From Camelus ferus (Eukaryota): a stretch of DNA of 64,000 nt. The notes beneath the pieces were generated by a model. It was not told the DNA's origin. It worked only from the letters and a program-made list of their open reading frames with translations, and did no database searches. The stretch lies in assembly GCF_009834535.1 (NCBI RefSeq), contig NC_045705.1, positions 34,348,001 through 34,412,000 of the forward strand. The letters run 5' to 3'. This document shows positions 18,517 to 55,138 of the stretch, piece by piece (position 1 is the first letter of the stretch; every line of letters begins with the position of its first letter). The translations under genes were made by a program, and so were the position numbers.

Positions 18517-18743
18517 AACTTTTTAATAACTCCCATTGCATCTGCAATGGCCAGCTTCTCCAGTGAAAATTACTTTTTCATACAAATATCTGACCCTATT
18601 CCCTATGCTCATTATTATGTTATTAGGCTTCCAATCCAGTGTCCAAGGGAGCAGTGCAGATTGTGCCTGTGTTCAAGTAGAGAAGAGCAGAACAGTGAAG
18701 ATGGGGGACCTGGCGGGCTCACCTTTCTAACACAAAGGTAGGT
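18517..18743 (+). promoter_or_regulatory. Candidate promoter and first non-coding exon of OR4D6 (module 1)
   Basis: AACTTTTTAATAA-C-TCCCATTGCA at 18517-18540, TATTCCCTATGCTCATT...TATTAGGCTT block, CCTTTCTAACACAAAG|GTAGGT donor. Homologous to modules 2-5. Confidence 0.65.
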
Positions 18744-19317
18744 GAGGGCATCCTGAAGACACAGTTGCAGGCAAATTCAGCTTAACACCCACACAATTTT
18801 ATGATTTTATTATTGTTCTGTCTCAGCCCCTGAAAGGTAAGCTATCCACGTGCAATTCTTGAAGTATACGTCTTGTAGGACTGATATCCTTAAGCTGGTT
18901 ACAATCTCCTGCTCTCTCCTGTAAATTATTAGGCTTCTCAAGGCACATTCAAATGAGATTATTGTTTTATATTAAAACTCATTCTATAAACATTTAATGA
19001 GCACCAACAATGTATAGGAAAGTAACTGGCACAGCCTCTTTCTTTAAAAAAAAAAAAGAGAGAGAGAGAGAAATTAAAAGCAAGCTGGGAGCAGGGAGAG
19101 AAATACAATTTTATAGCGACTTTAGCATTATGATGATGTTGGATAATGCTTTGAAGCTTCCAATAGGCTCCCGTGTGAATTGTCATTTAATTGATTTATG
19201 CAGCAACAAAAGTGAATAGGGGGCAGGAGGGGGAAGTCTAGATGACCCCGGAGATGGAGGAAAGGAGAACAAGCCCTTGTTGGGTGACGACTGCCCACCA
19301 GGCACTGGCCGTCCACT

Positions 19318-19500
19318 TGTTCATTCCTCTATTCACAAAGAATTACTGGATAGCTGATACAAGCCCGGTAGGAGCTGGGGAGACAATGGTGACAAAACAG
19401 AGTCCCAGTCTTTGAGGAGTTCACATTTGGAGGAAGAAGCAGAAACAGACAGACACGTAAGAACAGGCAATAAAACAGTGCTGGGCCATCTCAAATAAAC
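19318..19500 (-). mobile_element. L2 fragment
   Basis: ttcattcctctattcacaaagaattactgg...ggagacaatggtgacaaaacagagtcccag. Confidence 0.6.
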
Positions 19501-20080
19501 CCCACTGCACAGTAAGCCTTGTGCCCCCCGTTTCATGGAAGGAGATTTCCAGGAGCATAAAGGTTAACCTGCTTGGGGACACACAGCCAAAATTTAAAAT
19601 ACTCGAGCCTGAGTTCAAAGGCTGTGCTCTTTTGAACAAGCTGCCTCTAGATTCCATAATACAACCGTGAAGTTACAAGAGAGAAAGGCCACCATTTGAT
19701 CTTGACCTGACATCGGGCCTGAGAGTCCAAAACCTTCCATGATGATTGACCAGGAGAGCAAGGGGGAACCATATTAATCCAAAAGAGAAGCCAACAGTAA
19801 GTATCTTTGATCTCATTTTCCAGAGCTCTAACTTGGCTGGTCCCAGAGTCTCTCCTGGAAGCCTCCAGCCAACGCCTGGGGAACCATAATATACCAAAAG
19901 AATAATTAGAACTGTCTTCCCTCCTATACCTCCTCCCTTAATAACTTATCTTTCTTAGGACAATTTTACAGAAAGGGAAAAGAAAAATACAAAAATTGTA
20001 ACATCATATCTCAAATTAACGGGAAAATCATCTACTTCAAGCTGTCAAGTATGTGTATGAGTTTTTTCTGATTTTCAAGA

Positions 20081-20270
20081 TTTTTTTATTCTTTATTTTA
20101 TTGAAATGTAGTCAGTTTACAATGTTGTGTCAATTTCTGGTGTACAGCACAATGCTTCAGTCATACATGAACATACATATATTTGTTTTCATATTCTTTT
20201 TCATCATAGGTTACTATAAGATAGTGAATATAGTTTCCAGTGCTATACAATATGAACTTGCTGTTTACTA
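20081..20270 (-). mobile_element. Short lineage-specific L1 3' end (type A)
   Basis: ttgaaatgtagtcagtttacaatgttgtgtcaatttctggtgtacagcacaatgcttcag, shared with copies at 39.4, 42.7, 53.3 and 63.1 kb. Confidence 0.85.
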
Positions 20271-20349
20271 TTTTATATGTATTAGCAAGATAAGAAGCCA
20301 TTTAAAGTCATTTTTTTAAATTGGAAACAATAGATTATCTCTTTAAAGT

Positions 20350-21350
20350 AACATTACCAAAATCCAGTTACCCACAGGTAACAGTATACATCTTTCCAGA
20401 TTTCTTCTAGACATGTAGGTTTTTTTCCAATGATAACATTATATGATATATCCAGTGCTTCAACCTTTTACTAATAGGGAATCTTACCATGTCTAAGAAT
20501 AAAGGTCTATGTTATCAATTTGAATGGCTGCAAATATTGAATCATTCTATTGTACCATAACTTACTGAACCAATTTTATAAATCAGACATTAATTTAAAT
20601 TCTAATTTCTTCTATACTGTGATGAACATTCTTTGTATTTATGACATTAAGCAATTGGTTTAGTGATTCTTTAGCATAAATTCCCAAAGTGGAATTTCTG
20701 AGCCAAGGATTTGCACTGTTTAAGTTTTGACACATATTTCCAGAATGACTCTAGAAAGTGTGTCCCTGTGTACATTCCTCTCAACTACATATAGAGGTGT
20801 CTCTTTCCCCATATCTATGCCAGTAATGGATTTTTTCATCACTGGCCCATCTTCTAGATGAGAAGTGACATCCTATTATTATTTTAATTTGCATTCGTTT
20901 GATTGATAGTATGAGTGGCCACCTTTTCACATGTGGGCTGATCAGCTAAATTTCTCTGTAAATCATGACCCATTTTTGTTTTCAAGTATCCATTTCTTAC
21001 TGAATGATAAGAGCTCTCTAGATACCAAAAAATTAAGCTTATTTTATATTTTTTACAAATATTTCCTCAAGTTTTTCATTTATTTTTAGTTTTAAACTTA
21101 TTTTAAACACTTCTGAAATCTGGAAGTTTCATATTTCTATTTAGCCAAATCTAATAATCTTCCATGCAATGCCTACAAAGTTCTTCTCTACCCCAAAATT
21201 ATTTTTTAAAAATTTACTTAAATTTTATTCTAATATTTTAAATTATTTTTGCGGTTTATATTATATAAGTTGTCGAAATCTCCAGCCTTCCATGTTGAGA
21301 AGTTTAAAAAAACTATTATTTGTTTCAGCTCATGGTATTACCTATAAAAA
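20350..21350 (-). mobile_element. Old L1ME-type fragment
   Basis: taaattcccaaagtggaatttctgagccaagg..., ttttaatttgcattcgtttgatt. Confidence 0.65.
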
Positions 21351-21390
21351 GTAATCAAATATTCAAACGCAATTAGAATTAGGTTTGTTT

Positions 21391-21660
21391 CTTTTTTTTA
21401 ACATTTTTTATTGATTTATAATCATTTTACAATGTTGTGTCAAATTCCAGAGTAGAGCACAATTTTTCAGTTATATATGAACATATATATATTCATTGTC
21501 ACATTTCTTTCTCTGTGAGCTACCGTAAGATCTTGTGTATATTTCCCTGTGCTATACAGTATAATCTTGTTTATCTATTCTACAATTTTGAAATCCCAGT
21601 CTATCTCTTCCCACCCCTGCCCCCTTGGCAACCACAAGTTTGTATTCTATGTCTATGGGT
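21391..21660 (-). mobile_element. Short lineage-specific L1 3' end (type B) with 13-bp TSD
   Basis: acattttttattgatttataatcattttacaatgttgtgtcaaattccag. Flanks ggtttgtttcttt at 21382 and 21658. Confidence 0.85.
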
Positions 21661-23125
21661 TTGTTTCTTTACAATACCTTGTTTATCATTTAAATTTAGA
21701 AAATTAACACATCGTTTGACCCATGTCTGGACTCACAGATGTACATGAAAATGCATTTGCAAAATGTTGAGAGCAGCATTATTTTAAAGTAGTAATTAGG
21801 GCCCAACTAGGCAAACTGAAGAGGGCAATGTATGACTTGTGGCCCCATCCCCTCCTGCACGTTCTACAAGCCTGACTCCCAAAGCCACCCACAGACCTCT
21901 AGTTTCCAAATTCCCCTTTCCAACCCCCGTCTCCCAAGGCTGCTGTGCGCTCCTGGCTAGTGCCCCATTCCACTCCAGCCTTCACGACCAGTGTTTACTC
22001 TTGACCTGCCTGATTGACATATACCTGTGAAAACCAGTCTCTACCTTAGTTACCAATGTATTTACCCATCACATTCCACAAAAGATCAGGAAGGTCATAC
22101 AGCAAAAACTACAAAACACATACAATAAGCAATAATATGTAGGTAAGAAACTGTTACGAGACAACACCTGAAAAAATACGGAGTAAGAAGTTGAGCCACA
22201 TCTATACTTTGGAGTGTATGAAGGACAAAACAAAGCGATATGGCCCAGTACGTAGTCCTCATTACCTAAGAAGAAGAATCTTACTGGTTTCCCAGGGGAG
22301 CTGTCCCTTAACACATGGGTCTTGGATAAACATTTCTCTTGTGGTCTCAAATAAGGGGAACTGAATAAATCTTGCCCTCAATACAGTCCTGAGGTAAGGT
22401 CTTCTTTGTAGACACCCTTGATAAAAGGCAGTAACTTAAGTCCGAATATAGGGTACCATTTGCATAGCTTTCTGTCATTTGCTAGGTGGCAGTTTAAAAA
22501 AAAAAAGGCTGTATGGGAATCAGTTCTAGGTAATGTGCCACTGAATGCCAGGCTATTAAGTGAGATTCCCATTGGATCACATTTTTTTTTAAACCCTTAA
22601 AGGAAATTCACTTTTCCACAGGAATTAAATTGTTCTAATGGTGAGAACATTAGGAATCTAGGAAAATCAAGAAAACCTTTTTATTTAGGAGGCTTTCTGT
22701 ATGTCCTAACTCCTCAGATTAAACCATAAAATGCACCCAACTGTAACAGAGCTGAAAAAAGAAACATCAAGAAATAGGTTGTTTGCAAGATGCTTTACTA
22801 TGCTTTTGCTTCACAGAAAATGATCTGTCCTTTTTTTTATCCAGTTTACCTCTTCTTTCTCATCCTATTTTCTTCAAATATTAATTCCATTGCTCCAAAT
22901 ACAAAACTGTCTACCTTCTATTGTTGAACTGGATTTTGACCACCTTAACTATTTGAATTTTTTAAAATTATCTGGTTGATGAGAATTCTTGGACATAGAG
23001 ATATTCTTATTAAAGGGAGTTTGCACTCTGGTGACCAGATATCTAATTTGAAAAAAAAAAACTATTTTTCTGTAATATAGTAGTAGGAGAAAGTTGTTGG
23101 AATTTAATTCAATAAACCTGGTCAA

Positions 23126-23430
23126 AATTCTCTATCTTTCTGTGAGTTTGACTGTTTTAGATGCTACATATAAATGAGATCATGCAGTATTTGTCCTTCT
23201 GTGTCTGGCTTGTTTCACTTAACAAATGTCCTCCACTTACAGAAGAAGAGTAGAATGGTGATTGCCAGAGGTTGGGAGTATGGGGCAAGGGGCAGATATT
23301 GGTCAAGGAGTACAAAGTCCAGTTGTGCAGGATGAGTAAGTCCTGGAGATCCGCAGTAGAACAGCAGTGTGACTATAGTGAAAAATATTGCATAGCTCTT
23401 ACATGTTCTCATGACCAAAATATTAAAAAA
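23126..23430. mobile_element. 5'-inverted L1MB-type fragment (minus piece 23126-23235, plus piece 23236-23430)
   Basis: The reverse complement of 23126-23235 is the L1 segment just upstream of the plus-strand piece. Confidence 0.65.
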
Positions 23431-23837
23431 TCACCAAAATACTTGAAATTTTCTTTAATTCTCCATCTTTCACCAATTCATAGACTAATTCTGGAAAAAT
23501 AAATACTCTTCTCTGTTCCCCTTTAAAGGGGGGAGAGTTGGGGTAAACCACATCCGAGATCCTGAAGCTTTAATCATCAGTTTGTCTGTGATACTTTCAT
23601 ATGCTCTGGACAATGACTGCAGCTGCACACGCTACCAGGAGCCCATGGGCCCAAATGAGGCCCAAGTGTCTCCACGTACAGGGAGTTCTTATGAGGGCCT
23701 GATTCGTCTCTTCCTTTAAGGGAAAAGAGGATTGAGGAGGCAGGCGACTTATCTACTCATTGTAATTCTGATAAACCAAAGTAAGCCCCAGACTCTCTGA
23801 TCTGACAGAGTGCTACAGTGGAAAAACCTCTGGAGAC

Positions 23838-24297
23838 TCAGAGAAAAAATTATTCACTGGGCTCTTGTTAAAAATGGCAAGACAGATTTTATTCATGACT
23901 TGAGGGTCAAAACTATTGCAGTAGAGGAGAGAGACTGAGCTCAATTCCAAATACAACAAGGACGAGTGAGGATTTATAGCCAGTGAACAGAGTGAGGGGG
24001 TCAGTGGATGGAAAATTACCAAGAGGAGATATCAAGGTTGGGGGGATTCTTGCTTTAGAAGGATTTTTGCTAAAGTTAAGCCAAAGACTTAGACACAAGT
24101 GGTTGGATATCAAAGGCAGGAATAAGGAGTTTGATCAGAAATCAAAAGTAAGGGCTTCTGGCTAACCTGATTTAGCAAGACTCTTGCTAAAACTGACCTC
24201 TGCAATGAAAGACAAGGAAGGCCAAGGTCGAGACCTGGTTGAGAAGAGAGCTCAGAAGAGCCTAACTGAAATTTGATCAGGGAAAGAGTCCTTGTCA
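23838..24297 (-). mobile_element. ERV1-type solo LTR
   Basis: On the minus strand it starts TGACAAGGACTCTTTCC, has AATAAA near its 3' end, and has internal gggtcagtggatggaaaattaccaagagg. A related copy lies at 46607-46915. Confidence 0.7.
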
Positions 24298-24304
24298 AGT
24301 CAGA

Positions 24305-24430
24305 AATTTTGCCCAGGTTTGAATCCTTGATTTTCCACTTATTAACTTGGCAAATACACAAATGTGAGCGAGTCGCTAACTGCTTTAAGCTTCGGTCTCC
24401 CCTGTATAAAATGGGGATAGTCATAACTAC
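24305..24430 (+). mobile_element. MIR fragment
   Basis: ccaggtttgaatcc...ctcccctgtataaaatggggatag. Confidence 0.65.
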
Positions 24431-24862
24431 TCTATAGACCCCCAGAGAGACTATAGAGTATCTATATGGGAATCCAAATCAGGATGATGTTACAGGTGAA
24501 GCCTTTGGTAAAGGATAAAGCTTTGCGTACATGTGAAGTTATTCTTACAGGACAGAAGGTAAGTCATAGCCAAAGGACCATCTTCATCTCTCTCTGTCAG
24601 ATGAAGGACATAGGAGTATGATGGTTCTTCCGGTCAACCCGGGCTATTTACAATAAAAAAGAAGAGTCATCAGGGCAAAAATTTTTCAGATCTTCACAAA
24701 AAGGAAGACTCAAGCACAGGTTTTCTAGTAGTCATGAAGATCTAAACGCTTAAAAGAGCCTTGTATCAGTATATGATCCATGATGTTGCCCCTTATGACA
24801 CCATACTCCTAACCCTAACATATCTTCTTCCAAGATAGACCTGGATGAAGGTGGTCCCCATC

Positions 24863-25807
24863 ATGGGCCAGAGCAACCACACCGGCGTGAAGGAATTTGT
24901 CTTCCTGGAACTCACTCACTTCCGGGAACTGGAGTTTTTCTTGTTTGTGGTCTTCCTTGCTGTGTATGTAACAACCGTGCTGGGCAATGCCCTCATTGTG
25001 GTGACCATCACCTGTGAGTCCCGCCTCCACACTCCCATGTACTTTCTCCTGCGGAACAAGTCAGTCCTAGATATTGTTTTCACATCTGTCACTGTTCCCA
25101 AGTTCCTGGTGGATCTTCTATCAGAGAGGAAAACCATCTCCTACAATGGCTGCATGGCACAGATATTTTTCTTCCACTTTGTTGGTGGAGCAGATATTTT
25201 TTTTCTCTCTGTGATGGCCTATGACAGATACCTTGCAATCTCCAAACCCCTGCATTATGTGACCATTATGAGGAGAGAGATGTGGGTGGCCTTGGTGGTG
25301 GCTTCCTGGGTAGGTGGTGGTTTGCACTCCATTGTCCAGATAATTCTGATGCTTCCACTTTCCTTCTGTGGCCCCAACATCCTGGACGCCCTCTACTGTG
25401 ATGTGCCCCAGGTGGTTAAGCTGGCCTGCACTGACACCTTTGCTCTGCAGCTTCTCATGATCTCTAACAATGGGCTGGTGACCCTGCTGTGGTTCCTCCT
25501 GCTCCTGGGGTCCTATACCGTCATTCTGGTGATGCTGAGAGCTCACTCTGGGGAGGGTTGGAACAAAGCCCTCTCCACCTGCACCTCCCACATCCTCGTG
25601 GTGACTCTTCACTTTGTGCCCTGTGTTTACATCTACTGCCGGCCCTTCACTATGCTGCCCATGGACACAGCTGTGTCCATCAACAACACGGTCATCACCC
25701 CCATGCTAAACCCCATGATCTACACCCTGAGGAACCAGGAGATGAAGTCAGCCATGAGGAGACTGCAGAGGAGGCTTGGGCCTGTTGAGAGCGAGAAACT
25801 GGGATGA
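24863..25807 (+). CDS. OR4D6: Olfactory receptor family 4D, open frame, 314 aa (OR4D6 orthologue); in-frame upstream ATG at 24845
   Basis: Diagnostic [24 protein letters not shown] and [14 protein letters not shown]-type motifs, plus MAYDRY and KALSTCTSH. Confidence 0.92.
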
Positions 25808-27084
25808 GCAGTCAGATTGAGACTGGACATTTATTTTGAGTTGGTTTTCTCAAACCACTGCCCTAAGGGTAAGAGGCAGCTAACTCTTTCTCCACAGTCA
25901 TTTCTGTATATCCCCAGAGCCACGAAACTCTATTAGAGAGGCTGTGAGAACAAAAGGAAGAGGTGAGATTGAACATCAGCCATCAGGCTTGCGGTCCGGG
26001 GAGAAGTAGGGGTCTGAGGTTGAAATCAATAACCTAAATGCTATTTTGGTGGATCTGTGGCCCTCATGCTACTTTCACCACCTGTGATGTGGGAATAGCC
26101 TTGTCTCCTGACAAGGTTGTCATGAGAATGAAACATTGAGAGGATTACAGTTGCATAGGTTAGCACCACTCCTGGCATTAATGAGGCATATAATCAATGC
26201 CCCCTATTATCCACACCTCTGTTCCTATATGTGCATATATACAGATATGGATATATTTATTCCACACATTCTCTCCCTAGTGACTGTTATTTTCAGTTGA
26301 TTATTAAAATCACTTCTTGATTTAATGCTGTAAGTACAGAATCTCTGATACATTTCACTAATTACTGAAAAGAGAAGGACTAGTTTAAGTTGTGTCAAGT
26401 CTGATATATCTATAAACAAATCTATACAAGAACCAAGTATTTCCTATTCTCAAGTCTTTTCTACTTTTTTGCCCACTGAGATTAATATCAAAAGGACTTG
26501 TCCAGTGGGGGGATGTATCTGCACAAAGTGCCCATTTCTTTTATGTCAACCTGAAGTTCCTTCTTTCCTCTATCCCCTCGTCCTATTTCACCCCTGGCTT
26601 TTAGAGCTGGAGCAAAACTGTAGTTTTGATCTATGTATGTATAGACAACTCAAGACACATCATTGTAGTACAAAAAAAATTACCTAAGAAGTAACTTTTC
26701 ACACACTCAAGACCCATTTTCTGTACCAGGAGAGAAAAGAAACATACTGTATGAAGGGTCATTTAGGACTAGAGACTGAATCTGTGTTATAATCCACCTC
26801 TCTCCCAAGAGAAGGAATCCAAGAAAAAGAAAAAAGAAAAAGAATAAATCTCCTTTCTCTCTCTATGCTCACCTCAAATTCCACGCTTCTGCCTTCAATA
26901 GTTTTTTCAAAAATTGGCCAAGAGGAATAAAGAAGTTGAGGAAATTGCAACATACAGAACAATTTTTTTAAAATGTTATGAGGGGTTAATATTTAGCTGA
27001 AAAGGTCCTTTTGGTGACACACATCTGTGATCTTCTCTGAGTCTTACAAGACAAAGAAACTGGGCCAAGACTCTAAATCATAGA

Positions 27085-27305: not shown

Positions 27306-27429
27306 TGAATGATCACATGATATGAAATGTCTGTATAAATGTTTCTTCAAAACTGAGAGAATCATAGAATATGCAGATATATGTCTTCTAGAACCGTACA
27401 AGGAAGGCATAGAAATGTGAGTATGTTTA

Positions 27430-27433
<4 letters not shown>

Positions 27434-27468
<35 letters not shown>
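27434..27468. repeat. (TG)17 microsatellite just 5' of module 2
   Basis: Directly visible. Confidence 0.97.
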
Positions 27469-27472
<4 letters not shown>

Positions 27473-27494
27473 GCATGCAATAATGACTTAGAAG

Positions 27495-27852
27495 CTGTTT
27501 AATAACCCCCACTGGAACTCCAACACTAGCAGAAGAATGTCCATCCTCTTTTCACACTCACATTCAGTAAAATCCCCTTTGCTAATTCCCATATTAGGCT
27601 TGCACCTTGGGGATTAGTGAGCATAGCAGGGACACTTTGGGACAAGCAGAAGAGCTATGATGATGTAACTCCCCACGTCTGCCTTTTCCAACATGAAGGT
27701 TGAAGAGAAGACACTGAAGTCCAGTATAACTAATCTTCACAAGAACTTCACCTCTAACGTGCTAGTTCTTCAGCATCACATACACTGAGGCCCAGCTACC
27801 CAGTCTCAGAAGGTGTAAATTCCTGGTTGGATACTGAAGGATTTAGGTAAGA
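27495..27852 (+). promoter_or_regulatory. Candidate promoter and first exon of the OR4D-like gene at 31.5 kb (module 2)
   Basis: TAATAA-C-CCCCACTGGA at 27500-27516, AATCCCCTTTGCTAATTCCCATATTAGGCTTG, GCCTTTTCCAACATGAAGG, donor TTTAG|GTAAGA at 27847. Confidence 0.65.
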
Positions 27853-30985: not shown

Positions 30986-31531
30986 TTAAAGCTATAAATT
31001 GACACAACATTGTAAACTGACTCTACTTCAATAAAAATATAATACGTAAAAAATATAATATGTTATTGAAGTTGATCCGTATCATGTTGTTACAGAAAGG
31101 CATTTGAGGGTTGATTTACTCTAACGGCTTTTAAGTCTAATGGCTTTTAAGCCATAGGAACAAAGTGGAATGTGAATAAAATCACAGTTGCTCTGATTCA
31201 CAAAGGCACAGGGAACCCACAACTGCTTCCACAAAACCTTCCTTAAGTTCTCTTCCTCGGCAACTTCTAGAGGTGGACTCTATCAGAAGCCAAAGGTCCC
31301 CATCAAGCTCAGTAAGGAAATGACCCTACAACTTGTACTAACCAGGGAGTGAAACAAGAGGAACTGAGGGATTTCTCCAGTTAACACAGCAAGTTCATGA
31401 AGAATAAGATACATGAGTTTTTGAATGATGTGTGTTCAATTTCTGTATGAGACAAACCTTTGCTTGATTTCATTGCCTCAGTAATATTATTATTTCGTTC
31501 AAAGCTGCACATGGAGAAAGGAATTCTTCCA

Positions 31532-32467
31532 ATGGCCTTGAGAAATCATACCAGGGTGTCTGAATTTATTTTTCGTGGACTGACCCAGTCTCAAGAACTG
31601 AGCTTGCTCTTATTTTTCTTTTTAGCTATAGTTTATGTAACAACTGTGTTAGCAAATATTGCCATCATGGTCACCGTGACCTGTGACTCTCGCCTTCACA
31701 CCCCCATGTATTTTTTGCTCCGTAATTTGTCTATTGCCGATATCTGCTTTTCCTCCATCACAGCTCCCAAGGTTCTGGTGGACCTTCTGCGACAGAGTAA
31801 GACCATCTCCTTCAATGGCTGCTTCGCCCAGATGTTTTTCTTCCATCTTATTGGAGGGGTGGATGTATTTTCTCTGTCACTGATGGCCTTAGATCGGTAT
31901 GTGGCCATCTCTAAGCCCCTGCACTATGTGACCATCATGAATAGAGGCTGCTGCGTTGGGTTNNNNNNNNNNNNNNNNNNNNNNNNNNNNNNNNNNNNNN
32001 NNNNNNNNNNNNNNNNNNNNNNNNNNNNNNNNNNNNNNNNNNNNNNNNNNNNNNNNNNNNNNNNNNNNNNNNNNNNNNNNNNNNNNNNNNNNNNNNNNNN
32101 TGACATTTTTATGCTTGAGCTGCTGATGATTTCCAACAATGGACTGCTCACCACACTGTGGTTTCTCCTCCTCCTGGTGTCCTATACAGTCATATTATTA
32201 TTACTGAGGTCTCAAGCAGGGGAGGGCAGGAGGAAAGCCATCTCCACCTGCACGGCCCACATCACGGTGGTGACCCTGCACTTTGTGCCCTGCATCTACG
32301 TCTATGCCCGGCCCTTCACTGCCCTCCCCACTGATAAGACCATATCTGTCACCTTCACCATCATCATCCCTGTCCTGAACCCCATGATCTACACCCTGAG
32401 GAACAATGAGATGAAGTCAGCCATGAAAAGACTGAAGAGAAGACTCACGCGTTCTGAGAAGGAATAA
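31532..32467 (+). CDS. OR4D-family olfactory receptor, probably intact (311 aa if the 138-N gap is real length); OR4D10-like core with distinct ends; alternative in-frame ATG at 31511
   Basis: [50 protein letters not shown]. The frame is kept across the gap at 31963-32100. Orthology is uncertain, so no symbol is given. Confidence 0.8.
31963..32100. other. Assembly gap (138 N) inside OR CDS
   Basis: Run of N. Confidence 1.
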
Positions 32468-39745: not shown

Positions 39746-40393
39746 AAAATAGAGGTGGAAAAAATACCCATCTCAAACACACAATCTGTACCATGCAGTT
39801 TTTATCTTTGTAGACTAGTTGAATGTACAAAAACAAAATCGAAAAGCAGTTAAATTCATCATCATTCAGGGAAACAGTGAAATCAGATTCTATATAAGAT
39901 GAAACCATCTAATAAACTGAGTTCAACTTAAATAACTACTGCAATTGTGTGGACAGCTTTACATTAGTACTTATCTGATAGCTGTATCGAAATTGAGAAA
40001 TTCCTTTGAGTAGAGTGTTGGAAAACAGGAAAACTGTGCATTCCCCAGACACCACCTAAGTCATGTTTCTCTACGTGAGGAGACTCATGAGACATAATCA
40101 TCCAGTGTATAATCAGAAACTGGACTAATAGCAAATGATTTGAGGTCCAGCTCTCTTCTTCTAGCTTTTTGGCAATATAATTAAAACTCCTTTGTCTATG
40201 ATATCCTCTGAGCCTTGCAAGCCATCAGAATTGGACCTTTTTAGTCTCTTGGGAACAGCAATTGGCATATTTTAACAAAGTTCTGATTGAGCCGTGGATA
40301 AAGTCACAGGTTTCATCTACTGCCTCTAAATAATTTGGACACCAACCAAAATGTGTCCATGTGTGTGTGTGTACACATGTGGATGTCTCAGTG

Positions 40394-40743
40394 ATTTTTA
40401 ATAACTCCCACTGAAAATTCGTCACCAGCAGCAGAATCAGGCACCTGACTTTCACTTCCTTGTCCAGTAATATTCCCTTTCCAACTTTTATATGAGTCCT
40501 GAGACTGAGAGATTTGTGCGAAGACAGGAACACAGTGAAAGAACCATCAGGATGTGATTCATTGAACCTGCCCTTTCTCTCCTGAAAGGGGAGAAAAGAC
40601 ACTACAATATTTAGTCCTCCAAAGGGCTTTATCTTCAGAAACAAAATTTTCAAGAATTAATGTCACCAGTGCTTTGTTCTGTACCCTACCTAATGGCATA
40701 CAATTGGTACTTGGAGTTTCAGGATCAAAAGAATTAGGTAAAG
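40394..40743 (+). promoter_or_regulatory. Candidate promoter and first exon of OR4D10 (module 3)
   Basis: TTTTTAATAA-C-TCCCACTGAA at 40395-40415, TAATATTCCCTTT, GATTCATTGAACCTGCCCTTTCTCTCCTGAAAGG, donor ATTAG|GTAAAG at 40738. Confidence 0.65.
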
Positions 40744-42689: not shown

Positions 42690-43215
42690 ATTTTATTTAA
42701 TTTTATATTTTTTTTATTGAAGTATAGTCAGTTTACACTGTTACATCAATTTCTGGCGTACAGCACAATGCTTCAGTCATACAGGAACATATATATATTT
42801 ATTTTCATATTATTTTTCACCATAAGTTACTACAAGATATTAAATATAGTTCCCTGTGCTATACAGTATAAACTTGTTTATGTATTTTATATACATTATT
42901 TAGTATCTGCAAATCTAGAATTCCCAGTTTATTCCTTCCCACCTTCCTCCCCACCCCTGGTAACCGTAACTTTATTTCTATGTCTGTGAGTCTGTTTCTG
43001 TTTTGCAAACAAGNNNNNNNNNNNNNNNNNNNNNNNNNNNNNNNNNNNNNNNNNNNNNNNNNNNNNNNNNNNNNNNNNNNNNNNNNNNNNNNNNNNNNNN
43101 NNNNNNNNNNNNNNNNNNNNNNNNNNNNNNNNNNNNNNNNNNNNNNNNNNNNNNNNNNNNNNNNNNNNNNNNNNNNNNNNNNNNNNNNNNNNNTTCTTTA
43201 TTCAGTCATCTGTCA
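42690..43215 (-). mobile_element. Type-A L1 3' end containing a 180-N gap (43014-43193)
   Basis: ttgaagtatagtcagtttacactgttacatcaatttctggcgtacagcac. Confidence 0.85.
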
Positions 43216-43440
43216 ATAGACACAAAAGTTAGTTTTATAGGAAAAGAATTATTGAATGATTTTGCCTGTGATTTTTTGATTTGATCACTAAACAGATTGT
43301 AATCTTAAAAATCTGGACAACTCAACAAATTGCAACCACTACCACCACATGGGAAACATTCTGATTTGCATTCATAGCACTTAAGAAGAAAATGCACGTT
43401 CGTATGAAATAGCTTGAAAGGAGAAAAAGAAGAAGATTCA

Positions 43441-44376
43441 ATGGAGCTGGGAAACTGCTCCAGGGTAAAAGAATTTGTTTTCCTTGGCCTAACCCAGAAT
43501 CAAGAACTGAGTTTGGTCTTATTTCTTTTCCTACTTTTGGTGTATGTGACCACTCTGCTGGGAAACCTCCTCATCATGGTCACCGTGACCTGTGACTCTC
43601 GCCTTCACACCCCCATGTATTTTTTGCTCCGTAATTTGTCTATTGCCGATATCTGCTTTTCCTCCATCACAGCTCCTAAGGTTCTGGTGGACCTTCTGCG
43701 ACAGAGAAAGACCATCTCCTTCAATGGCTGCTTCGCCCAGATGTTTTTCTTCCATCTTATTGGAGGGGTGGATGTATTTTCTCTGTCAGTGATGGCCTTA
43801 GATCGGTATGTGGCCATCTCTAAGCCCCTGCACTATGTGACCATCATGAATAGAGGCTGCTGCATTGGGTTNNNNNNNNNNNNNNNNNNNNNNNNNNNNN
43901 NNNNNNNNNNNNNNNNNNNNNNNNNNNNNNNNNNNNNNNNNNNNNNNNNNNNNNNNNNNNNNNNNNNNNNNNNNNNNNNNNNNNNNNNNNNNNNNNNNNN
44001 NNNNNNNNNTGACATTTTTATGCTTGAGCTGCTGATGATTTCCAACAATGGACTGCTCACCACACTGTGGTTTCTCCTCCTCCTGGTGTCCTATACGGTC
44101 ATATTATTATTACTGAGGTCTCAAGCAGGGGAGGGCAGGAGGAAAGCCATCTCCACCTGCACAGCCCACATCACAGTGGTGACCCTGCACTTTGTNNNNN
44201 NNNNNNNNNNNNNNNNNNNNNNNNNNNNNNNNNNNNNNNNNNNNNNNNNNNNNNNNNNNNNNNNNNNNNNNNNNNNNNNNNNNNNNNNNNNNNNNNNNNN
44301 NNNNNNNNNNNNNNNNNNNNNNNNNNNNNNNNNNNNNNNNNNNNNNNNNNNNNNNNNNNCTTCTGACAGGGTATAG
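43441..44376 (+). CDS. OR4D10: OR4D10 orthologue, probably intact (311 aa if gaps are real length); gaps at 43872-44009 and 44196-44359
   Basis: ATG at 43441 (the track start at 43414 is TTG). [43 protein letters not shown] and C-terminal SDR match OR4D10 as recalled. The frame is kept across both gaps. Confidence 0.8.
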
Positions 44377-46390: not shown

Positions 46391-46606
46391 GCGTGGATTC
46401 CTCGCTGCAAGTGTTTCCTGTGAGAACCCCATCATCCGCTTTGATCATCAGCCCACCGAGATCTCCTTCAAGCTCACCTGCGTACCTCTTCCGATCCAAA
46501 GGTTCCTTCCAATACTCATGGGTCACACTTCAAAATCTCCCCGCAGGGATGAAGCTGCCTATGGAAGTTGTTCACAATACCTAAGAATAGACATTTATTT
46601 CCCAAG

Positions 46607-46915
46607 AGGAAAATTACCAAAGGGAAACATCGGGGTAAGGGGGCATCCTGGATAAGCTGGCCCAACAGGACTCTTGCTGAAGGCAGACCAGGGCGATTAG
46701 ACATGGCCTGGGGGATGGCACCTGAGGCACCTGCTGAGATGTGGAAGGTGGTCAGCATGGAGGCTGGAGAATTCTGGCTAAAGTGACTTTGCAGGGGTTT
46801 TGCTAAAATTGGACAATGCCGAGACAAACATGGAGGTCCAAAAGTCAAGGCCTCGTTAAAAAATTCAGGGGAGGCTCAACATTGGTTGATTGGTCAAGGA
46901 GAGAAGCTTTATCAC
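46607..46915 (-). mobile_element. Truncated ERV1-type LTR related to 23838-24297
   Basis: ggaaaattaccaaagggaaacatcggggtaagggg; ttctggctaaagtgactttgcaggggttttgctaaaa; starts TGATAAAGCTTCTCTCCTTGACC on the minus strand. Confidence 0.65.
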
Positions 46916-46973
46916 TGCTAGAAAATTGTAGACCCTAGACAGTGTGTGTTCCTAAGTGCATGTGCCAGAGTAG

Positions 46974-47298
46974 CCTGTTAATTACTCCCACTGAAACAAC
47001 TTCTCCATCAGCAGAATTTTTCCAGAGCCACTTCCAACTATATTCCCCCTGATAATTCCCACACTAGTGTTGGGATTAAGGAACTGGTAAATATGATGGG
47101 GCCCTGGGAATCAGTATGAAGAACCAAGATAATATGATTCCCTGAGTCTGCCCTTTTCCACATAAGGGTGGAAGAAAGCCATTGAAATCACTGCCTGCAA
47201 AGGGATATTTGACAGAATATTCCAAAGCTGAATGATTCCTGGGAACATTATATATGATGCTGGAGTCCTGGAAATAAGTTTGGAGATCTTAGGTAAGA
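46974..47298 (+). promoter_or_regulatory. Candidate promoter and first exon of OR4D11 (module 4)
   Basis: TAATTA-C-TCCCACTGAA at 46979-46995, TATATTCCCCCTGATAATTCCC, O/E-like GCCCTGGGAA at 47101, GATTCCCTGAGTCTGCCCTTTTCCAC, donor CTTAG|GTAAGA at 47293. Confidence 0.7.
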
Positions 47299-48529
47299 GA
47301 TACGACTCTCAGTATGTACGTCTGTGGTGTCTGGATGCTTATGCGTAAGAGTGAGAAAATAAAAGTGAGGAAAACTGAAATCTAGATGTAATTGTTAATA
47401 TTTATAGATATATTTTGACTGCAAATAATGTAATGAGTACCCAAGATGCTGCATTCCAGGATGAGCCTTCAGTGACAGACAGCATAGACAGGAAATATTA
47501 GCAAGGAAGACATTGCGAAACAAAAGTCATAAAAATAAGTCCAGTTAGGAATTGAGAAAAGGCAGCTTTTGTTTTCTGGCACCCCTGAAATTATACCAAA
47601 AAGAGATTTTTCTGATTGCTCTAGACGGACCTCCTCAGACTGAAATCTTCAGATCTGATGCTAAATTCAAAACTAGAGAAAAAAATATAATTTTTCAAAC
47701 CCTCCAAAAAAATTGAAAGACTAATACAATGAACGTCTACATACTCTACCTTAGATTTACCAAAAAGAAAAAAAAAAAGGTACAGCAATGATTTTTTTCC
47801 TGTCTTTCCACGCCTATATGTTTGCATCTTTCCATTCCAGCCAAACTTCCCATTCCCAAGCTGCTTTCATATACTCATGGGGGTCCCCTGAAGCCAGAGC
47901 TCCCTTTCCATCCCTTCCCATCTGCCCCAGATGTGAACGTCACCTCCTCACGCAGGATTCTCTGATCCTCTTAATGAGAACTCATCCTCTCCTCACACAC
48001 AACTCTTCACCTGTCCTTGGGTGGTCCCCACCACTCCCATATTGCTATTACGTTTGAATCCATTTTCTGTTGGTTTGGGGTTATATTCCTTTCTCTCAAA
48101 TAACCTAGAACTCGGCCAAGTTTCCATCAATACTTGCTAAGTAATTAGGTGGATTCAAAATAGCAGAAAAACAGAGCAGAATCTGGACGATGTTGTCTGA
48201 ATGACCAAAGGCAGTTTGTGAACATGGGACCTATTCCTTTCCGATGAAGGGGTCTGACTTGGGGCCCAGGGTAACTTCCAACCTCCGGTGTAGGTCATGG
48301 TCTGTTATGTACAAGGGCGGCCCTATGGAAGGCCTTTGTAACTAGGATGGATTCCCTCAATCTTTCTACTAACTAAGTGGAGCTGGTGTTTTCGAGTGAT
48401 CATTTCCTCTCTCTTTAAACTAGTCAGGATTGATAACAGCTTCCATTTAGTTCCATACATTCCATTTACTAATAAGCCTCCAATGTTGACGTTACTCAGC
48501 AGAGTTGTAGTCACAGCAGAAAACCTGTG

Positions 48530-48730
48530 TGCCGAGACAGCTGCATGTGTTAACTCACTGGGTCCTCATAGCATCCCTGGGAGGTGGGTGTGATGATCCC
48601 CACCCCATGGATGAAGAAGTGGAGGCTCGGGGAGGTCTCTCACTCACCCAAATCGCACAGTGGCAGGACTTGCGCCCGGGTGGTTCTCACTGCAGAGACC
48701 ACACATTAGACATCCTGGTCTGCTCAGATG
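48530..48730 (-). mobile_element. MIR SINE
   Basis: gggtcctcatagcatccctgggaggtggg...ggatgaagaagtggaggctcggggagg. Confidence 0.65.
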
Positions 48731-48835
48731 ATGTCACACAAGAAACCAAAACAAGCGGGCACCTTGTTTCTCAGGGCCACACGGTCCCCATCTTCTGGGC
48801 TGCTCTGGGTTACCACTGAAAGATAAATATCTTCT

Positions 48836-48927
48836 GGTTTTTGTTTTAAACAGAGGTACTGGGGATTGAACCTAGGACCTTGTGCATCTAAGCATGTGCT
48901 CTATACCACTGAGCTGTGCCCTCCCCC
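48836..48927 (-). mobile_element. Vic-1-type SINE, short form
   Basis: gaggtactggggattgaacctaggaccttgtgcatctaagcatgtgctctataccactgagctgtgccctccc. Confidence 0.9.
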
Positions 48928-49572
48928 CACCAAGAGAAATATTTTCCATTTTCCTCAAAACAGGAGGTTTTGATGAAGTTGTAGAGTACACGTTCTGGGA
49001 AATATTCAGCTCCTCCAAAAGACTGTCAGGATATTTAAAGAAGTTGTGTGTCTGTGAGAGTTACTAACCCAGCGTTTTTCTTGAAGGTGACACAATCATT
49101 GTGGATGAAGCGATGTTCTGAGTACTGATGCTTTACATAGATTACTTCATTGCATCCTCACAAGGAAGCCTGGGGCCAAAGGGGTGAAGTCACTTGCCCG
49201 TGTTTGCACAACTGGTAAGTGTCCAGCTGGGATCTGAACAGGCTGTGTGAGCCAGAGTCCCCCAGGTCCCTGCCACATGCTGTGGTACCTCTCAGTGGCT
49301 TTTTAAGTTTCCCATACTAAGCAGGCTTTGGACAAAACTGCAAACGGAGGAATAGGACTTGAAGGGGAAGTGAGCTGAGGGAAAAGAAGTATCTTCATTT
49401 GAACTGAAAAAATAAACCCCAAAATGAGGAGGGAAGTGACTTTAACCTTTCTTTTGTTTCTGATTATAGTAAGAAAAGGGAGATAAACTGCAAAGAAAGA
49501 AATTAAGATCCATTTTAAGGATTCGCACACACACACACACAAAAAAGATAGGACTTCAAAAGCCATAATATT

Positions 49573-50535
49573 ATATGGTAAGAGTACGTTTAACATTTTA
49601 AGAAACTGCCAAACTTTTTAAGGGCTATTGGACCATTTTATGTTCCCACCAGAGTTCCAGTTCCTCCACATTTTTGCCTGCTCTTCATAGAGCTGTCTTT
49701 TTCATTTTAGCCATTCTAATCAGTGTGTGCTCCTATCTTGCTGTGGTTGCCATTTACATTTCCCCAGTGATAAATGACGGTGAGCATCTTTTCACATGCT
49801 TATTTGCTATCCCTACATCTTCTCCTTGAGGTGTCTGTTCAAACCATTTGTCCTTTTTTTTATATATATAATTTATTTATTTGGGGGGGGTAGTGATTTA
49901 TTTTTAATGGAGGTACTGGGGATCGAACCCAGGACCTCGTGCATGTTAAGTACGTGCTCTACCACTGAGCTATACCCTCCTCCCTGATCCTTTATCTTTT
50001 TATTGAGTTTTTTTTTTCTTATTATTGAATTCTTTAAGAGTGACAGCCATTCTACTCCTGGATACTTGCCCAAATGAAATGAAAACATGTGTCCACATGA
50101 AGACCTGTGCACAAATGTTTACAGATGCTTTGTGTGTAAGAACCCAAAACTAGAAACAACCAAAACATTCAACAAGTGAGTGGATAAGCAAACTGGTATA
50201 TCCGTACAATAAAGAGGAACAAATCTTGTCCTACACCACAACATGGATAATTTTTATAAGTGAAAGAAGTCAAACAAAAAGAGAGTACATATTGTAGGAT
50301 TCCCATTCACAGACAACTCCAGAAATACAGACTAATGTATAGTGACAGAAAGCAAGCAGCTCCGTGGTTGCCTGAAGAAGGAGGGCAGAGGGGACAGATT
50401 ATGAAGGGTCAGGAGGACACTCTGGGGTGATAAATACATCACCTGTCTTAACTACAGTGATGATGCCATGGGAATATGCTTATGTCAAAACCTATCAAAG
50501 CATCCACTTCAAGTGCCGGAGTCTATGTGTCAATG
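49573..50535. mobile_element. 5'-inverted L1MB-type insertion (minus 49573-50040, plus 50041-50535)
   Basis: The minus piece ends at L1 ...ttaccatat and the plus piece resumes at (t)gacagccattctactcctgg. Confidence 0.75.
49856..49984 (-). mobile_element. Vic-1-type SINE nested in L1
   Basis: ggaggtactggggatcgaacccaggacctcgtgcatgttaagtacgtgctctaccactgagctataccctcc. Confidence 0.92.
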
Positions 50536-51132
50536 ACAGCTCAAAAAAATTTTTAAGAAATAAATCAGAGAGACGAACAGAAGCTCTGATTACACTTTCA
50601 TTTCTATTGCTGTTATTTCAACAGCCAGTGGTTTTGGTACATAAAGTAGTTTAAAGTGAAGACAGAAACAAAGAAATCCCATTAAGGAAGACTAGAGCAA
50701 TAGAGAGGAATTTTATGGCGGTAAGATTTTCTTATTTTCCATAGGATTAAATTTGTGGTTTTAAAAAAGAAAGGAGTGCTTTTGTAGAATTCAGTCCAAA
50801 GAAAACCATTCTGCAGCGAGTGGTTCTTAAACCATTTAAATGCGGCACCCAGTCTGTCTGAACTTAGAACTTAAAGATTTAGAACATTATTTTATGCATT
50901 TTCTAAAATATTTATAATTTACAGAAGAAAGAATTGTTAAATGCACGCTGTGTAATAAGATACCACTTTGCACATGATAGCAATACTTCCAGCTCTTCAG
51001 TGGTGATAATACTTCATTAGTTTTTAGACCTAACATCTGGCTCTATAAACCTGAATCTATAAGGGAGAGTAAACGCTTTGTGAAACAACATTTTTAATTT
51101 TTTCCAACTACAGAGGAAGAGAATATGATTCA

Positions 51133-52068
51133 ATGGAGCTGGGAAATGGCACCAGAGTAAAAGAATTTATATTCCTGGGACTTACTCAGTCCCCAGACCT
51201 AAGCTTGCTCTTATTTCTTGTTTTGTGTTTTGTGTACATGACGACTCTTCTGGGAAACCTCCTCATCATGGTCACCGTGACCTGTGAGTCTCGCCTTCAC
51301 ACCCCCATGTACTTCCTGCTCTGCAATCTAGCCATCCTGGACATCTGCTTCTCCTCCATCACTGCTCCCAAGGTCCTAGTAGACCTCCTGACCAAGATAA
51401 AGACCATATCATACACAAGCTGCATGATGCAGATGTTTTTCTTCCACCTCCTCGGTGGGGCAGATATTTTTTCCCTCTCTGTCATGGCCTTTGACCGCTA
51501 CATGGCCATCTCCAAGCCCCTGCACTACGTGACCATCATGAGCAGAGGGCGATGCGCTGCCCTCATTGTGGCCTCCTGGGTGGGGGGCTTTGTCCACTCC
51601 ATCGTGCAGATTTCCCTGTTGCTCCCACTCCCCTTCTGTGGTCCCAATATTCTTGACACGTTCTACTGTGATGTCCCCCAGGTCCTCAAACTCGCCTGCA
51701 CTGACACCTTTGCCCTTGAGCTGCTGATGATTTCCAACAATGGCTTGGTCACAACCCTGTGGTTTATCTTCTTGCTTGTGTCCTACACAGTCATCCTCAT
51801 GATGCTGAGGTCCCAGACAGGGGAGGGCAGGAAGAAAGCCATTTCCACCTGCACCTCCCACATCACGGTGGTGACCCTGCACTTTGTGCCCTGCATCTAC
51901 GTCTATGCCCGGCCCTTCACCGCCCTCCCCACGGATAAGGCCATCTCTGTCACCTTCACTGTCATCTCCCCTCTGCTCAATCCTATGATCTACACCCTGA
52001 GGAACCAGGAGATGAAATCAGCCATGAGGAGACTGAGGGGAAGACTCGTGCATTCCATAGTGGGATAG
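51133..52068 (+). CDS. OR4D11: OR4D11 orthologue, intact, 311 aa
   Basis: [54 protein letters not shown] match OR4D11 as recalled; gene order fits. Confidence 0.9.
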
Positions 52069-53044
52069 AGTAAGACTCTCCAACCTCTTCATCAGCAAAG
52101 ACTCCTTTCATTGTTCTTTCCACAGAGTCATATTTATTTACCCAAATATATTGTCAATAGACCAGCTACACGTACTAGGTAACAATTTATTTTTCATTTT
52201 AATATGTTACTGATAACCCAAACTATTGATAAGCATGAGTATCTAATGTGATAGAACTGAGCTGATTGATGTATTTCCACTCAAAGACCAAAGTAATGAT
52301 GTGTCAAACATGAAAACTATATGGCAGGTGTAGAGACTGACTGAATCCAACCCCTTTTTCAAGAGGTCAGTAAATAGAAGACTAAAGATAAAGTGATTTG
52401 CTCAAGATCTTGCATCGAGTTAGTTACAAAGACAAGTCTTCAGATAATTAATTGCTCTTCTACCATATAAATGTAATTTATTACATTACTGGGCCCGTCC
52501 ATGCCAAACTGCAATCTTCTTCTAGAAAGATCTCATGATCAGTGCCTCTGAAGTACACACATATGAGTACATCACAGATTAAGAAAGTTTTTCTGCTTTG
52601 GTAAACTTCATATGGTCTTATGACCTATTAAGAACCTCAAAGGGACATAATTGAGGTCCCCCCACCCCCGCCAGATTCCTATCAGGAATGAAGAAGCTTG
52701 GGAAGATTTCCCATAATGGCCTCAAGGGATTTATCTTATGCGGAACTAGACATGCCAGATTCACATCCTCATGTTAAGTTTAGACAAAGGCAGACAACCT
52801 CAGGGATCCTACACAAAGAACCATCAGTCACATTATCCAAGAACTGGTTTTCAGCTGCAGTCTTAGTGCAAATCTCAGATTGGCTTCCACTGAGGATTTA
52901 CATTCTTCCCACTGGAGACAGAGAAGGTGTTAGAGAAGATAAACTCTAACCAGTCTGTCTGTTTTTCCATTTGTTAGTGAAGAGGCAGTACAGGTGAGTG
53001 GTTTTTGTCTGGAACAACATGATTAAAAAAGTAAAGTAAAAAGT

Positions 53045-53270
53045 GAAACATTGTAGTTGAAAGCTCTAACTTCAGAGTCATACAGACCTGGGTCCAAACC
53101 CTACCTCTGTCCTCCACCAACTGTGGTATCTTGAGTTATTTTAACTCTTAACAGATCACAGTTCACCTACACAAATGTACTTATACTGTCCGTCTCATGG
53201 AGTTATTGTGAGGGATAGAAAAAGATGGTATATATGAAACACACAATGTCTGGCAGAGAATAAATGCTCA
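53045..53270 (+). mobile_element. MIR SINE
   Basis: cagagtcatacagacctgggtccaaaccctacctctg...ctcatggagttattgtgagg. Confidence 0.7.
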
Positions 53271-53286
53271 AAGGCAAATGGAGAAA

Positions 53287-53830
53287 TTTTTTTAATCGAA
53301 GTATAGTCAGTTTACAATGTTATGTTGGTTTCTGGTNNNNNNNNNNNNNNNNNNNNNNNNNNNNNNNNNNNNNNNNNNNNNNNNNNNNNNNNNNNNNNNN
53401 NNNNNNNNNNNNNNNNNNNNNNNNNNNNNNNNNNNNNNNNNNNNNNNNNNNNNNNNNNNNNNNNNNNNNNNNNNNTCATTATAGTCTGTTACAAGGTATT
53501 GAATTTAGCTCCCTGGGCTCTACAAGTTATCTATTTTATATATAGTAGTTAGTATCTGTAAACCCCAGACTCCCAATTTATCCTTCCACTGACCCCATCT
53601 TCCCCTTTGGTAACCATAACTTTGTTCTCTGTGTCTATGAGTCTGTTTCTGTTTTGTAAAGTAGTTCATTTGTGTCATTTTTTATAGTCCATGTGTAAGT
53701 GATATATGGTATTTTTCTTTCTCTTTCTAGCTTATTTCACTTAGTATGACAATCTCCAGGTCATCCATGTTGCTGCAAATGGCATTATTTTATTCTTTTT
53801 TATGGCTGAGTAGTATTCCATTTATATATA
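53287..53830 (-). mobile_element. Type-A L1 3' end containing a 139-N gap (53337-53475)
   Basis: aagtatagtcagtttacaatg...ttcacttagtatgacaatctccaggtcatccatgttgctgcaaatggc. Confidence 0.85.
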
Positions 53831-54904
53831 TACTCAGGTAGCTCTGGTCTCTGGACTTCCTAAGCTTTTCTTTATGAACTTGCCTATGAAAAAATGCATA
53901 CCACAAATCACCTTATGAACCATTTCATGCAAATATGTCCTTTCTTTTACTTTCTGTCTCTTTTGACTCACTCAGATCATAGTTTTATCACTATGTCAGA
54001 ACTTGATGGCACCGAAGACCTATGGAGTCTGAATACTGCATCTCAGAAGCATAATCCCACGAAGGCAGGAACTCAGGAACCCCAGCCACAACACTGTCCC
54101 TGATACTTCCTCAAACTATATCTAAATACGCAATATAATCTGATTCAATAATTCAGAAGAAAGGGAAAGCAATTGCATCTCATTACACAAAGATATATTT
54201 TTTAATCTGGATGACATAAAATCACAAGCTGGGCTGCATTTTTCTCATTTAAATCAGTTTTTACTATTTTTTAAGCTCTGCTGCAAAGAGTCATAGAAAA
54301 TTCAACAGACTCTGGGCACATAGATAGCTTTAAAACTACCCTTTCCTACTTTACTCCCCTGAATCAAACATTTTCATGATAAGCATCTCTGGGTACTCAT
54401 GGACCACATAACACAAAAAAAAAATTCTGAAGTAATTAAATTGATGAGTATCAAGAACTGCCACCATGCTTCCTCCTTAGGTTCTAAGTGAGCCACGGAT
54501 CCCTGAGATGCAGAGGAAAATAATTACATAGGGACAATGTACATGTCATATTAAACAGAAATTGTATGTATAAATCTACACCATCCAGTCTCTGAGAGCT
54601 ACCTTGACAGTAGCCACAGAGGTTTGATTTTTCTATTGTTACCCTCTTACTTTAGTTTCACTCCCCCAGCTGATTGCAAGCAAAGCACTTCTGATAAGGA
54701 GGGAAACTGCACAGTCCATAGGGTGGTTTAACACGACACTTTCTACCTCAGCCAAGGGGGCTAAGGCACTGTCTCATGCGGTTCCTCTAGAGAAAGAGAA
54801 AAAGCTATGTCCTGGATGTGCACTTAGTGTCTCTGCGCGTATCTGTGAGATGGGGCAGAGAAGAGATGAGGGAGGGGGAGAGAGACGGAGGAGGAGCGCT
54901 TGGC

Positions 54905-55138
54905 AACTTTTTAATGACTCCCACAAGAGCACCATTGAATTGGCCACTCAGCTTCCACATTCATTCCCAGCAATATTCCCTTTGCTAATTCCTTTATTAG
55001 GCTTGTGGCTGAGGGACCAATAGAGGTGGCCAAGGTACCGTAAGGCAACGTGGAAGAGTCAGAATGATGTGATTCCCTGAGGCTGCCTTTTCCCACCTGA
55101 AGGAAAAACGTAACAAAATCACTACCCTTAAGGTAGGC
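54905..55138 (+). promoter_or_regulatory. Candidate promoter and first exon of OR4D9 (module 5) with exact H/P-element 13-mer
   Basis: AACTTTTTAATGA at 54905-54917 then C-TCCCACAAGA, CAATATTCCCTTTGCTAATTCCTTTATTAGGCTTG, GATTCCCTGAGGCTGCCTTTTCCCAC, donor TTAAG|GTAGGC at 55133. A consensus O/E site CCCCAGGGGA lies at 55414. Confidence 0.72.

Follow-up and report, generated by a model that had tools for sequence, protein, structure and literature searches.

Five tandem OR4D olfactory receptor genes share a conserved upstream block, probably their proximal promoter, with abutting homeodomain and Ebf-type sites

The DNA analysed here is a 64-kb window (the whole stretch, positions 34,348,001 to 34,412,000 of Camelus ferus contig NC_045705.1), which contains six + strand olfactory receptor (OR) open reading frames (ORFs), with Pfam 7tm_4 found in all of those tested. 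Five of the six are OR4D-type, here called genes 1–5, with ATGs at 24845, 31532, 43441, 51133 and 60688; gene 3 is OR4D10-like, gene 4 is OR4D11-like and gene 5 is the OR4D9 orthologue, with up to 92% identity to named mammalian OR4D9 proteins. Upstream of each ATG lies one of five mutually similar blocks, which a preliminary description of this DNA had proposed to be the OR4D promoters. Our analysis indicates that they are likely to be proximal promoters, each followed by a short non-coding first exon, and that they were probably duplicated in tandem and held by selection.

All five blocks are on the + strand exactly where they had been reported, with TAAT starts at 18524, 27500, 40399, 46979 and 54912, and the distances from TAAT to ATG that had been given for them hold at 6.32, 4.03, 3.02–3.04, 4.15 and 5.78 kb for genes 1–5, respectively (the 3.0 kb of gene 3 depends on the stated length of a 180-N run at 43014–43193, as this run lies in its intron). 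Alignment of the blocks to each other using MAFFT, which had been proposed as a check, gave ~210 bp cores with pairwise identities of 52–66%:

18510–18742, + strand: block 1 core, putative proximal promoter of OR4D gene 1 (leave-one-out E 7e-12)
27486–27703, + strand: block 2 core, putative promoter of gene 2 (leave-one-out E 6e-37)
40386–40591, + strand: block 3 core, putative promoter of gene 3 (leave-one-out E 1.6e-23)
46965–47171, + strand: block 4 core, putative promoter of gene 4 (leave-one-out E 2e-25)
54898–55105, + strand: block 5 core, putative promoter of gene 5 (leave-one-out E 5e-36)

When nhmmer profiles were built from four blocks at a time, the fifth was recovered in every case (E 7e-12 to 6e-37), with no further match to these profiles anywhere in the 64-kb window. 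Likewise, the pattern TTAATNACYCCCA has five matches in the window, one per block and all on the + strand, against an expectation of 0.06. In a blastn self-comparison of the window the only similarities between units were coding exons (72–98% identity) and interspersed repeats, and 5' of the blocks the units share interspersed repeats only. Beyond the ~210-bp core there are ~110 bp of 30–50% identity, after which similarity resumes at a common GT donor. The introns had been described as dissimilar, which is mostly the case, although a more sensitive search with 1-kb flanks detected a weak colinear match of unit 3 to unit 2 (E 1.5e-6) and to unit 4 (E 1e-3) just 3' of the donor. Since the profile, pattern, blastn and flank searches match little else, the blocks stand as islands of retained similarity amid otherwise decayed units. 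Tandem paralogues of the mOR262/OR37 genes, a different subfamily, are reported to keep a short conserved block with O/E and homeodomain sites at their starts while the spacer diverges, and the OR4D genes resemble them in this respect.

Each block contains a TAATNA homeodomain site followed by a single C and a CCC-type site, an arrangement that had been noted for all five and is present at the positions claimed:

18524–18540, + strand: block 1, homeodomain site and Ebf-type half-site, TAATAA-C-TCCCATTGCA
27500–27516, + strand: block 2, homeodomain site and Ebf-type half-site, TAATAA-C-CCCCACTGGA
40399–40415, + strand: block 3, homeodomain site and Ebf-type half-site, TAATAA-C-TCCCACTGAA
46979–46995, + strand: block 4, homeodomain site and Ebf-type half-site, TAATTA-C-TCCCACTGAA
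54905–54928, + strand: block 5, AACTTTTTAATGA (H/P extended homeodomain 13-mer, exact) running into TAATGA-C-TCCCACAAGA

Two further modules, also described beforehand, were found in the blocks. The second (ATTCCC..TAATT..TATTAGG) lies at +61 to +72 and is based on a consensus of at least 90% across 21 blocks from eight species, and the third (CTGCCYTTTCCCAC.TGAAGG) lies at about +173:

54973–55017, + strand: second module of block 5, with ATTCCCTTTG (O/E-like half-site), CTAATT (homeodomain core), TATTAGG (TATA-like) and CTGAGGGA
18597–18652, 27570–27614, 40470–40513 and 47040–47084, + strand: second-module counterparts in blocks 1–4
55064–55103, + strand: third module of block 5, GATTCCCTGAGG (O/E-like, two mismatches) and CTGCCTTTTCCCACCTGAAGG

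Every block carries TAAT together with two or three TCCC-type sites. Compared with the window as a whole, block cores are three times enriched in O/E-like sites (11.2/kb vs 3.8/kb), have more TAAT cores (17.7/kb vs 10.9/kb) and are higher in GC (0.43–0.47 vs 0.39).

For comparison with other, non-primate mammals we used a search profile built from the blocks of this window alone. The profile matched 2.5–7.8 kb 5' of OR4D genes in cattle, horse, rabbit, sloth, Peromyscus and mouse, the matched genes being OR4D9 orthologues (cattle, horse, rabbit and sloth), OR4D10- and OR4D11-type genes of horse, OR4D10 of Peromyscus and mouse Olfr1424 and Olfr1425; in horse, blocks stand at three OR4D genes. 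A dog locus (L004) considered as the counterpart of gene 5 was rejected as a paralogue, with no alignment to the gene 5 region and only a weak block. Over 21 blocks from eight species, the positions conserved in at least 90% are TTAAT.A..CCCA and then, ~95–125 bp on, TA.TAGG..TG.G.CT..AGGGA.

The 3.2 kb upstream of OR4D9 was aligned in five species (the window species, horse, cattle, rabbit and sloth). The entire spacer is alignable across them at 66–79%, so the question is whether the block exceeds that background. In this comparison of orthologues, which had been put forward as a check on the blocks, all five species agree at 50% of the columns in the block, against 37% overall, and block 5 is the best-conserved 243-bp window of the alignment. 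The longest invariant run, of 14 bp, is TTTAATGACTCCCA at 54910–54923, the runner-up being 10 bp, and the TAATGA variant of block 5 is unchanged in all five species. The H/P 13-mer is not retained in horse, cattle, rabbit or sloth, which keep only TTTAATGA; its exact match is therefore lineage-specific and the constrained unit is TTTAATGACTCCCA. By these comparisons the pair of TAAT and CCC-type sites stands out as the most constrained element. The block and exon of gene 4 have 81% identity to the horse orthologue vs 72–78% in the flanks, and block 3 can be aligned over ~400 bp with horse sequence and, in mouse, with the proximal block of Olfr1424. Conservation at the orthologous loci is above that of the flanks, with a modest margin for the whole block.

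Some blocks in other species have departed from this arrangement. The horse OR4D11 block (L009 5880–6082) has TGATTAC where the window has TAATTAC, by which the forward TAAT is lost and the reverse-strand TAAT is kept, with the remainder of the site and the donor as in the window. Mouse and Peromyscus have two tandem copies of the block, ~250 bp apart, 5' of each OR4D10-type gene, and the exon and donor part continues from the proximal copy only. Furthermore, an orphan block pair lies 5.5–9 kb 3' of mouse Olfr1424 and of Peromyscus OR4D10, with no OR ORF after it in the rest of the mouse and Peromyscus loci examined, and in mouse the next gene, Olfr1423, begins ~16 kb beyond the pair (coordinates of Young et al.). 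One possibility is that the orphan pair served as promoter for an OR4D11-type gene that has since been lost.

L007 6895–7047/7147–7322, L008 6803–6958/7055–7230 and L006 6930–7076/7172–7347: muroid tandem copies
L007 16438–16571/16705–16859 and L006 19639–19809/19898–20072: orphan block pairs

The preliminary description had placed a GT donor after the AAGG block. An immediate GT is missing in block 3, but a donor common to all five lies further 3', 315–348 bp past TAAT, with exon ends at 18836, 27846, 40737, 47292 and 55242, and is strong, (A/T)AG/GTAA, in four. Both donors that were compared across species are retained, that of block 3 in horse and mouse and that of block 4 in horse:

18743–18836, + strand: putative 3' part of non-coding exon 1 of gene 1, poorly conserved, donor AAG/GTAAGC
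After 18737, + strand: alternative donor of gene 1, AAG/GTAGGT
27704–27846, + strand: putative end of exon 1 of gene 2, donor TAG/GTAAGA
40592–40737, + strand: putative end of exon 1 of gene 3, donor TAG/GTAAAG, with the 10-mer TAGGTAAAGA the same in horse and mouse
47172–47292, + strand: putative end of exon 1 of gene 4, donor TAG/GTAAGA, retained in horse
55106–55242, + strand: putative end of exon 1 of gene 5, donor CTG/GTATGT, GT in four of five species
After 55132, + strand: alternative donor of gene 5, AAG/GTAGGC, GT in four of five species

The acceptors named for the five genes are all present, with AGs that end at the right-hand coordinates below, pyrimidine tracts and distances of 11–37 bp to the ATGs:

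24820–24834, + strand: pyrimidine tract and AG acceptor of gene 1, 11 bp 5' of the first ATG
31490–31504, + strand: AG acceptor of gene 2
43363–43377, + strand: AG acceptor of gene 3
51099–51113, + strand: AG acceptor of gene 4
60643–60657, + strand: AG acceptor of gene 5, TTATTTCTTMCAG/AGAT retained in horse, cattle and rabbit

The blocks thus have the layout of OR promoters, lying 5' of the coding exon in the same orientation, with a donor on their 3' side and an acceptor a short way before the ATG; class II OR genes have a non-coding 5' exon, which splicing joins to an acceptor immediately upstream of the ATG. In sloth OR4D9 (L005 ~9990–10008) the acceptor region is deleted and TTG stands where other species align ATG, and this gene could be defective or have its start at another position. 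As evidence of upstream exons, the long gene models of goat and panda proved uninformative, being fusions or extensions of OR coding sequence.

Published OR promoters carry O/E and homeodomain sites no more than ~200 bp from the start, often together with a TATA-like box between -60 and -10; their surroundings are AT-rich, GC rises locally and CpG islands are absent (Young et al. 2011; 2025 review). The OR4D blocks share with class II OR promoters (M71, MOR23, P3 and 300+ mapped in mouse) the same site types, the TATA-like box and the AT-rich setting with a GC rise, and their TAAT and O/E-like sites lie within about 200 bp of the deduced start site. They differ in that the homeodomain site and O/E half-site abut at a fixed 1 bp in all five paralogues and in the species examined, a juxtaposition that published surveys describe as depleted in promoters.

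In the mechanism that we propose, one ancestral unit of promoter, exon, intron and coding sequence would have been tandemly duplicated before the placental radiation, with introns and spacers later diverging beyond easy alignment and ~210 bp of promoter remaining alignable because its binding sites would be under selection. A LIM-homeodomain factor (Lhx2, possibly Emx2) would bind the TTAATNA site, and Ebf/O-E proteins would bind the abutting TCCCA half-site and two further TCCC-type sites. With the putative TATA-like TATTAGG element ~95 bp past TAAT, transcription would start between about +125 and +220, and splicing would join a leader of 100–220 nt, ending at the GT at +315 to +348, to the AG 11–37 bp before the ATG. 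In the mouse OR4D (MOR239) family the sole mapped start site is that of Olfr1426, 3,062 bp before the ATG, and the blocks of Olfr1424 and Olfr1425 lie in the same range, 2.7–3.2 kb before theirs; no start-site coordinates for these mouse genes are given in the supplementary data of either Ibarra-Soria 2014 or Barnes 2020.

Each promoter had further been suggested to be built on an enhancer-type composite, and TAATNA-C-TCCC could indeed be a true Greek-island-type composite that gives enhancer-like promoters, either through Lhx2/Ebf co-binding coupled to Ldb1 recruitment in many neurons or through choice without a nearby enhancer. In the published composite, 1 bp separates the Lhx2 site from the Ebf site (Monahan et al. 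2017), and in the Sfaktiria probe (TAATTGA-TCTCCAAGGA) a 2-bp insertion impairs competition for Lhx2-Ebf fusion protein binding. The spacing part of the suggestion stands: TAAT and TCCC keep in each of the five blocks the order and spacing of Sfaktiria, the Ebf-type 10-mer beginning 7 bp past the T of TAAT, and the T-rich 5' flank is also alike (CTTTTTAAT in Sfaktiria, ACTTTTTAAT in the OR4D blocks). The 14-bp invariance in five species also speaks for a true composite, as do the perfect copy, in block 5, of the 13-mer from the H/P 'gene choice enhancer' and the mouse cluster Olfr1423–1428, whose genes are still expressed with the nearest Greek island, Rho, 715–789 kb off (Monahan et al.). However, the Ebf part is a half-site: its 5' half is good (TCCC, or CCCC in block 2) but its 3' half is weak, with two or three of four bases agreeing with GGGA (TGCA, TGGA, TGAA, TGAA and AAGA in blocks 1–5). 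The degenerate pattern WWAHDRRBHHHHNDRDD is matched by the sites at 16 of 17 positions (15 in block 1), failing at the spacer C, and with 238 matches in the window vs 180 expected it carries almost no information. The H/P element is found exactly in this species only and as a single copy in block 5, not multimerised, is followed by CTCCC rather than GTCT, and differs from blocks 1–3 by one, four and two bases; TTTAATGA is all of it that other species conserve. The HOMER composite matrix, with cut-offs of 5 (permissive) and 10 (stringent), was judged by proxy from the published best scores of mouse OR promoter windows, those of Olfr1423–1428 being identified via their listed distances to Rho. 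These six OR4D promoter windows score 4.40, 3.48, 3.48, 0.29, 4.94 and -0.23, all <5; by motif class three are 'Lhx2 motif only' and three 'no Lhx2, no Ebf motif', an Ebf motif being called in none of the six, and their genes carry the label nonGI (Monahan et al.). They are also absent from Supplementary file 1 of that study, which is presumably the list of promoters co-bound by Lhx2 and Ebf. Judged on these mouse literature data, the OR4D elements are not of the Greek-island enhancer kind (intergenic, co-bound and widely accessible) and would be promoters in a cluster that is not listed as such. By published criteria the sites are composite-like in spacing and are not enhancer-type composites, and we consider it unlikely that they act as true ones.

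The blocks might instead be conserved elements that regulate from upstream, as gene-proximal enhancers or as alternative promoters, with the main starts elsewhere, for example nearer the coding exon. The two tandem copies per gene in muroids fit this, and the orphan pair, with no OR ORF in the locus examined, shows that a block can exist without being the promoter of an adjacent gene. None the less, the conserved strong donor at a fixed distance after each block, the acceptors just before the ATGs and the Olfr1426 start site, 3.06 kb from its ATG rather than near the coding exon, make this account very unlikely. Similarity of the blocks as a functionless neutral residue of duplication, or as a shared interspersed repeat, would accord with the tandem duplication of the genes and with the weak leftover intron similarity among units 2, 3 and 4, but all else between the units has decayed, there is no extra copy in the window, the blocks are constant in place and orientation, and the core element is invariant in four placental orders. 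On the blastn, leave-one-out profile and invariant-core results we rejected this origin, the probability of which we take to be negligible. The preliminary reading of the blocks as OR4D promoters is very probably correct, given their position and strand, the splice signals, the conservation among paralogues and placentals and the homology to the promoter regions of Olfr1424 and Olfr1425.

Several points weigh against the promoter reading or loosen its detail. The start site, factor binding and splice are deduced from sequence and its comparison, and placements of the start site by the TATA-like element and by a model in which the whole block is upstream lie ~90 bp apart. A search of sequencing records gave no RNA run listed as covering this stretch. 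The margin of block over flank in identity to horse is modest (78–82% vs 71–78%). In addition, the placement of the mouse promoter windows rests on an assumed mm10-to-GRCm39 shift of 22,636 bp. Under this shift the Olfr1424 and Olfr1425 windows both contain an identical distal-block site, TTTAATAATCCCCATTGAAAC, and differ in their register relative to the blocks. The two windows have the same published score, identical to six decimals (Monahan et al.), and equal scores need a shift of 22,600–22,713 bp. As the windows share both the TTTAATAATCCCCATTGAAAC site and the score, the mouse homologue of the TAAT/Ebf-type site very probably scores ~3.5, given the assumed shift.

Outside the OR4D units, TAATTGATCTCTGGGGT at 2846–2862 on the - strand fits the published composite pattern strictly and is a near-copy of Sfaktiria TAATTGATCTCCAAGGA. 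Within 110 bp of it are ATCTCCAAGGAG and another O/E-like site (2924–2937 and 2949–2960), and the cluster lies 4.6 kb 5' of the non-OR4D receptor gene at 7442–8413. It could be the promoter of that gene or a Greek-island-like element.

None of the runs of N in the window overlaps any block, donor or acceptor. The three in coding exons are exactly colinear with gene 4 (143/143, 154/154 and 181/181 bases), which makes the reading frames consistent, and two of them are at homologous positions and of equal length (138); they look like exact-length masks rather than gaps of guessed size.

24845–25807, + strand: coding sequence of OR4D gene 1
31963–32100, 43872–44009 and 44196–44359: N runs within the coding exons of genes 2 and 3

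Between genes 2 and 3, coding-exon identity is 91–98% (31551–32286 vs 43460–44195), compared with 63% for their promoter blocks (27486–27703 and 40386–40591) and introns that are barely alignable, which points to gene conversion limited to the coding exon.

OR duplications that carry the promoter along are already recognised, and since this and the presence of homeodomain and O/E sites in OR promoters are known, the OR4D blocks represent a well-preserved but ordinary OR gene structure and leave the current model of OR gene regulation unchanged. The one unusual feature is the deeply conserved arrangement of abutting homeodomain and Ebf half-sites. It is conceivable, though we think it improbable, that OR4D is a natural exception to the rule that composite spacing belongs to enhancers, with a site kept since before the placental radiation and promoters that recruit Lhx2-Ebf-Ldb1 alone. 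If this were true, it could explain the robust expression of a mouse cluster >700 kb from any Greek island, and the variants TAATAA, TAATTA and TAATGA would set the choice probability of each paralogue. The comparison provides a multi-species picture of the probable promoter of one OR subfamily, with ~14 fixed bases and a probable non-coding exon end, and indicates how little else outlasts old tandem duplications. With enhancer-composite spacing but only half an Ebf site, the OR4D sites may also serve as natural probes of what Lhx2/Ebf co-binding needs.

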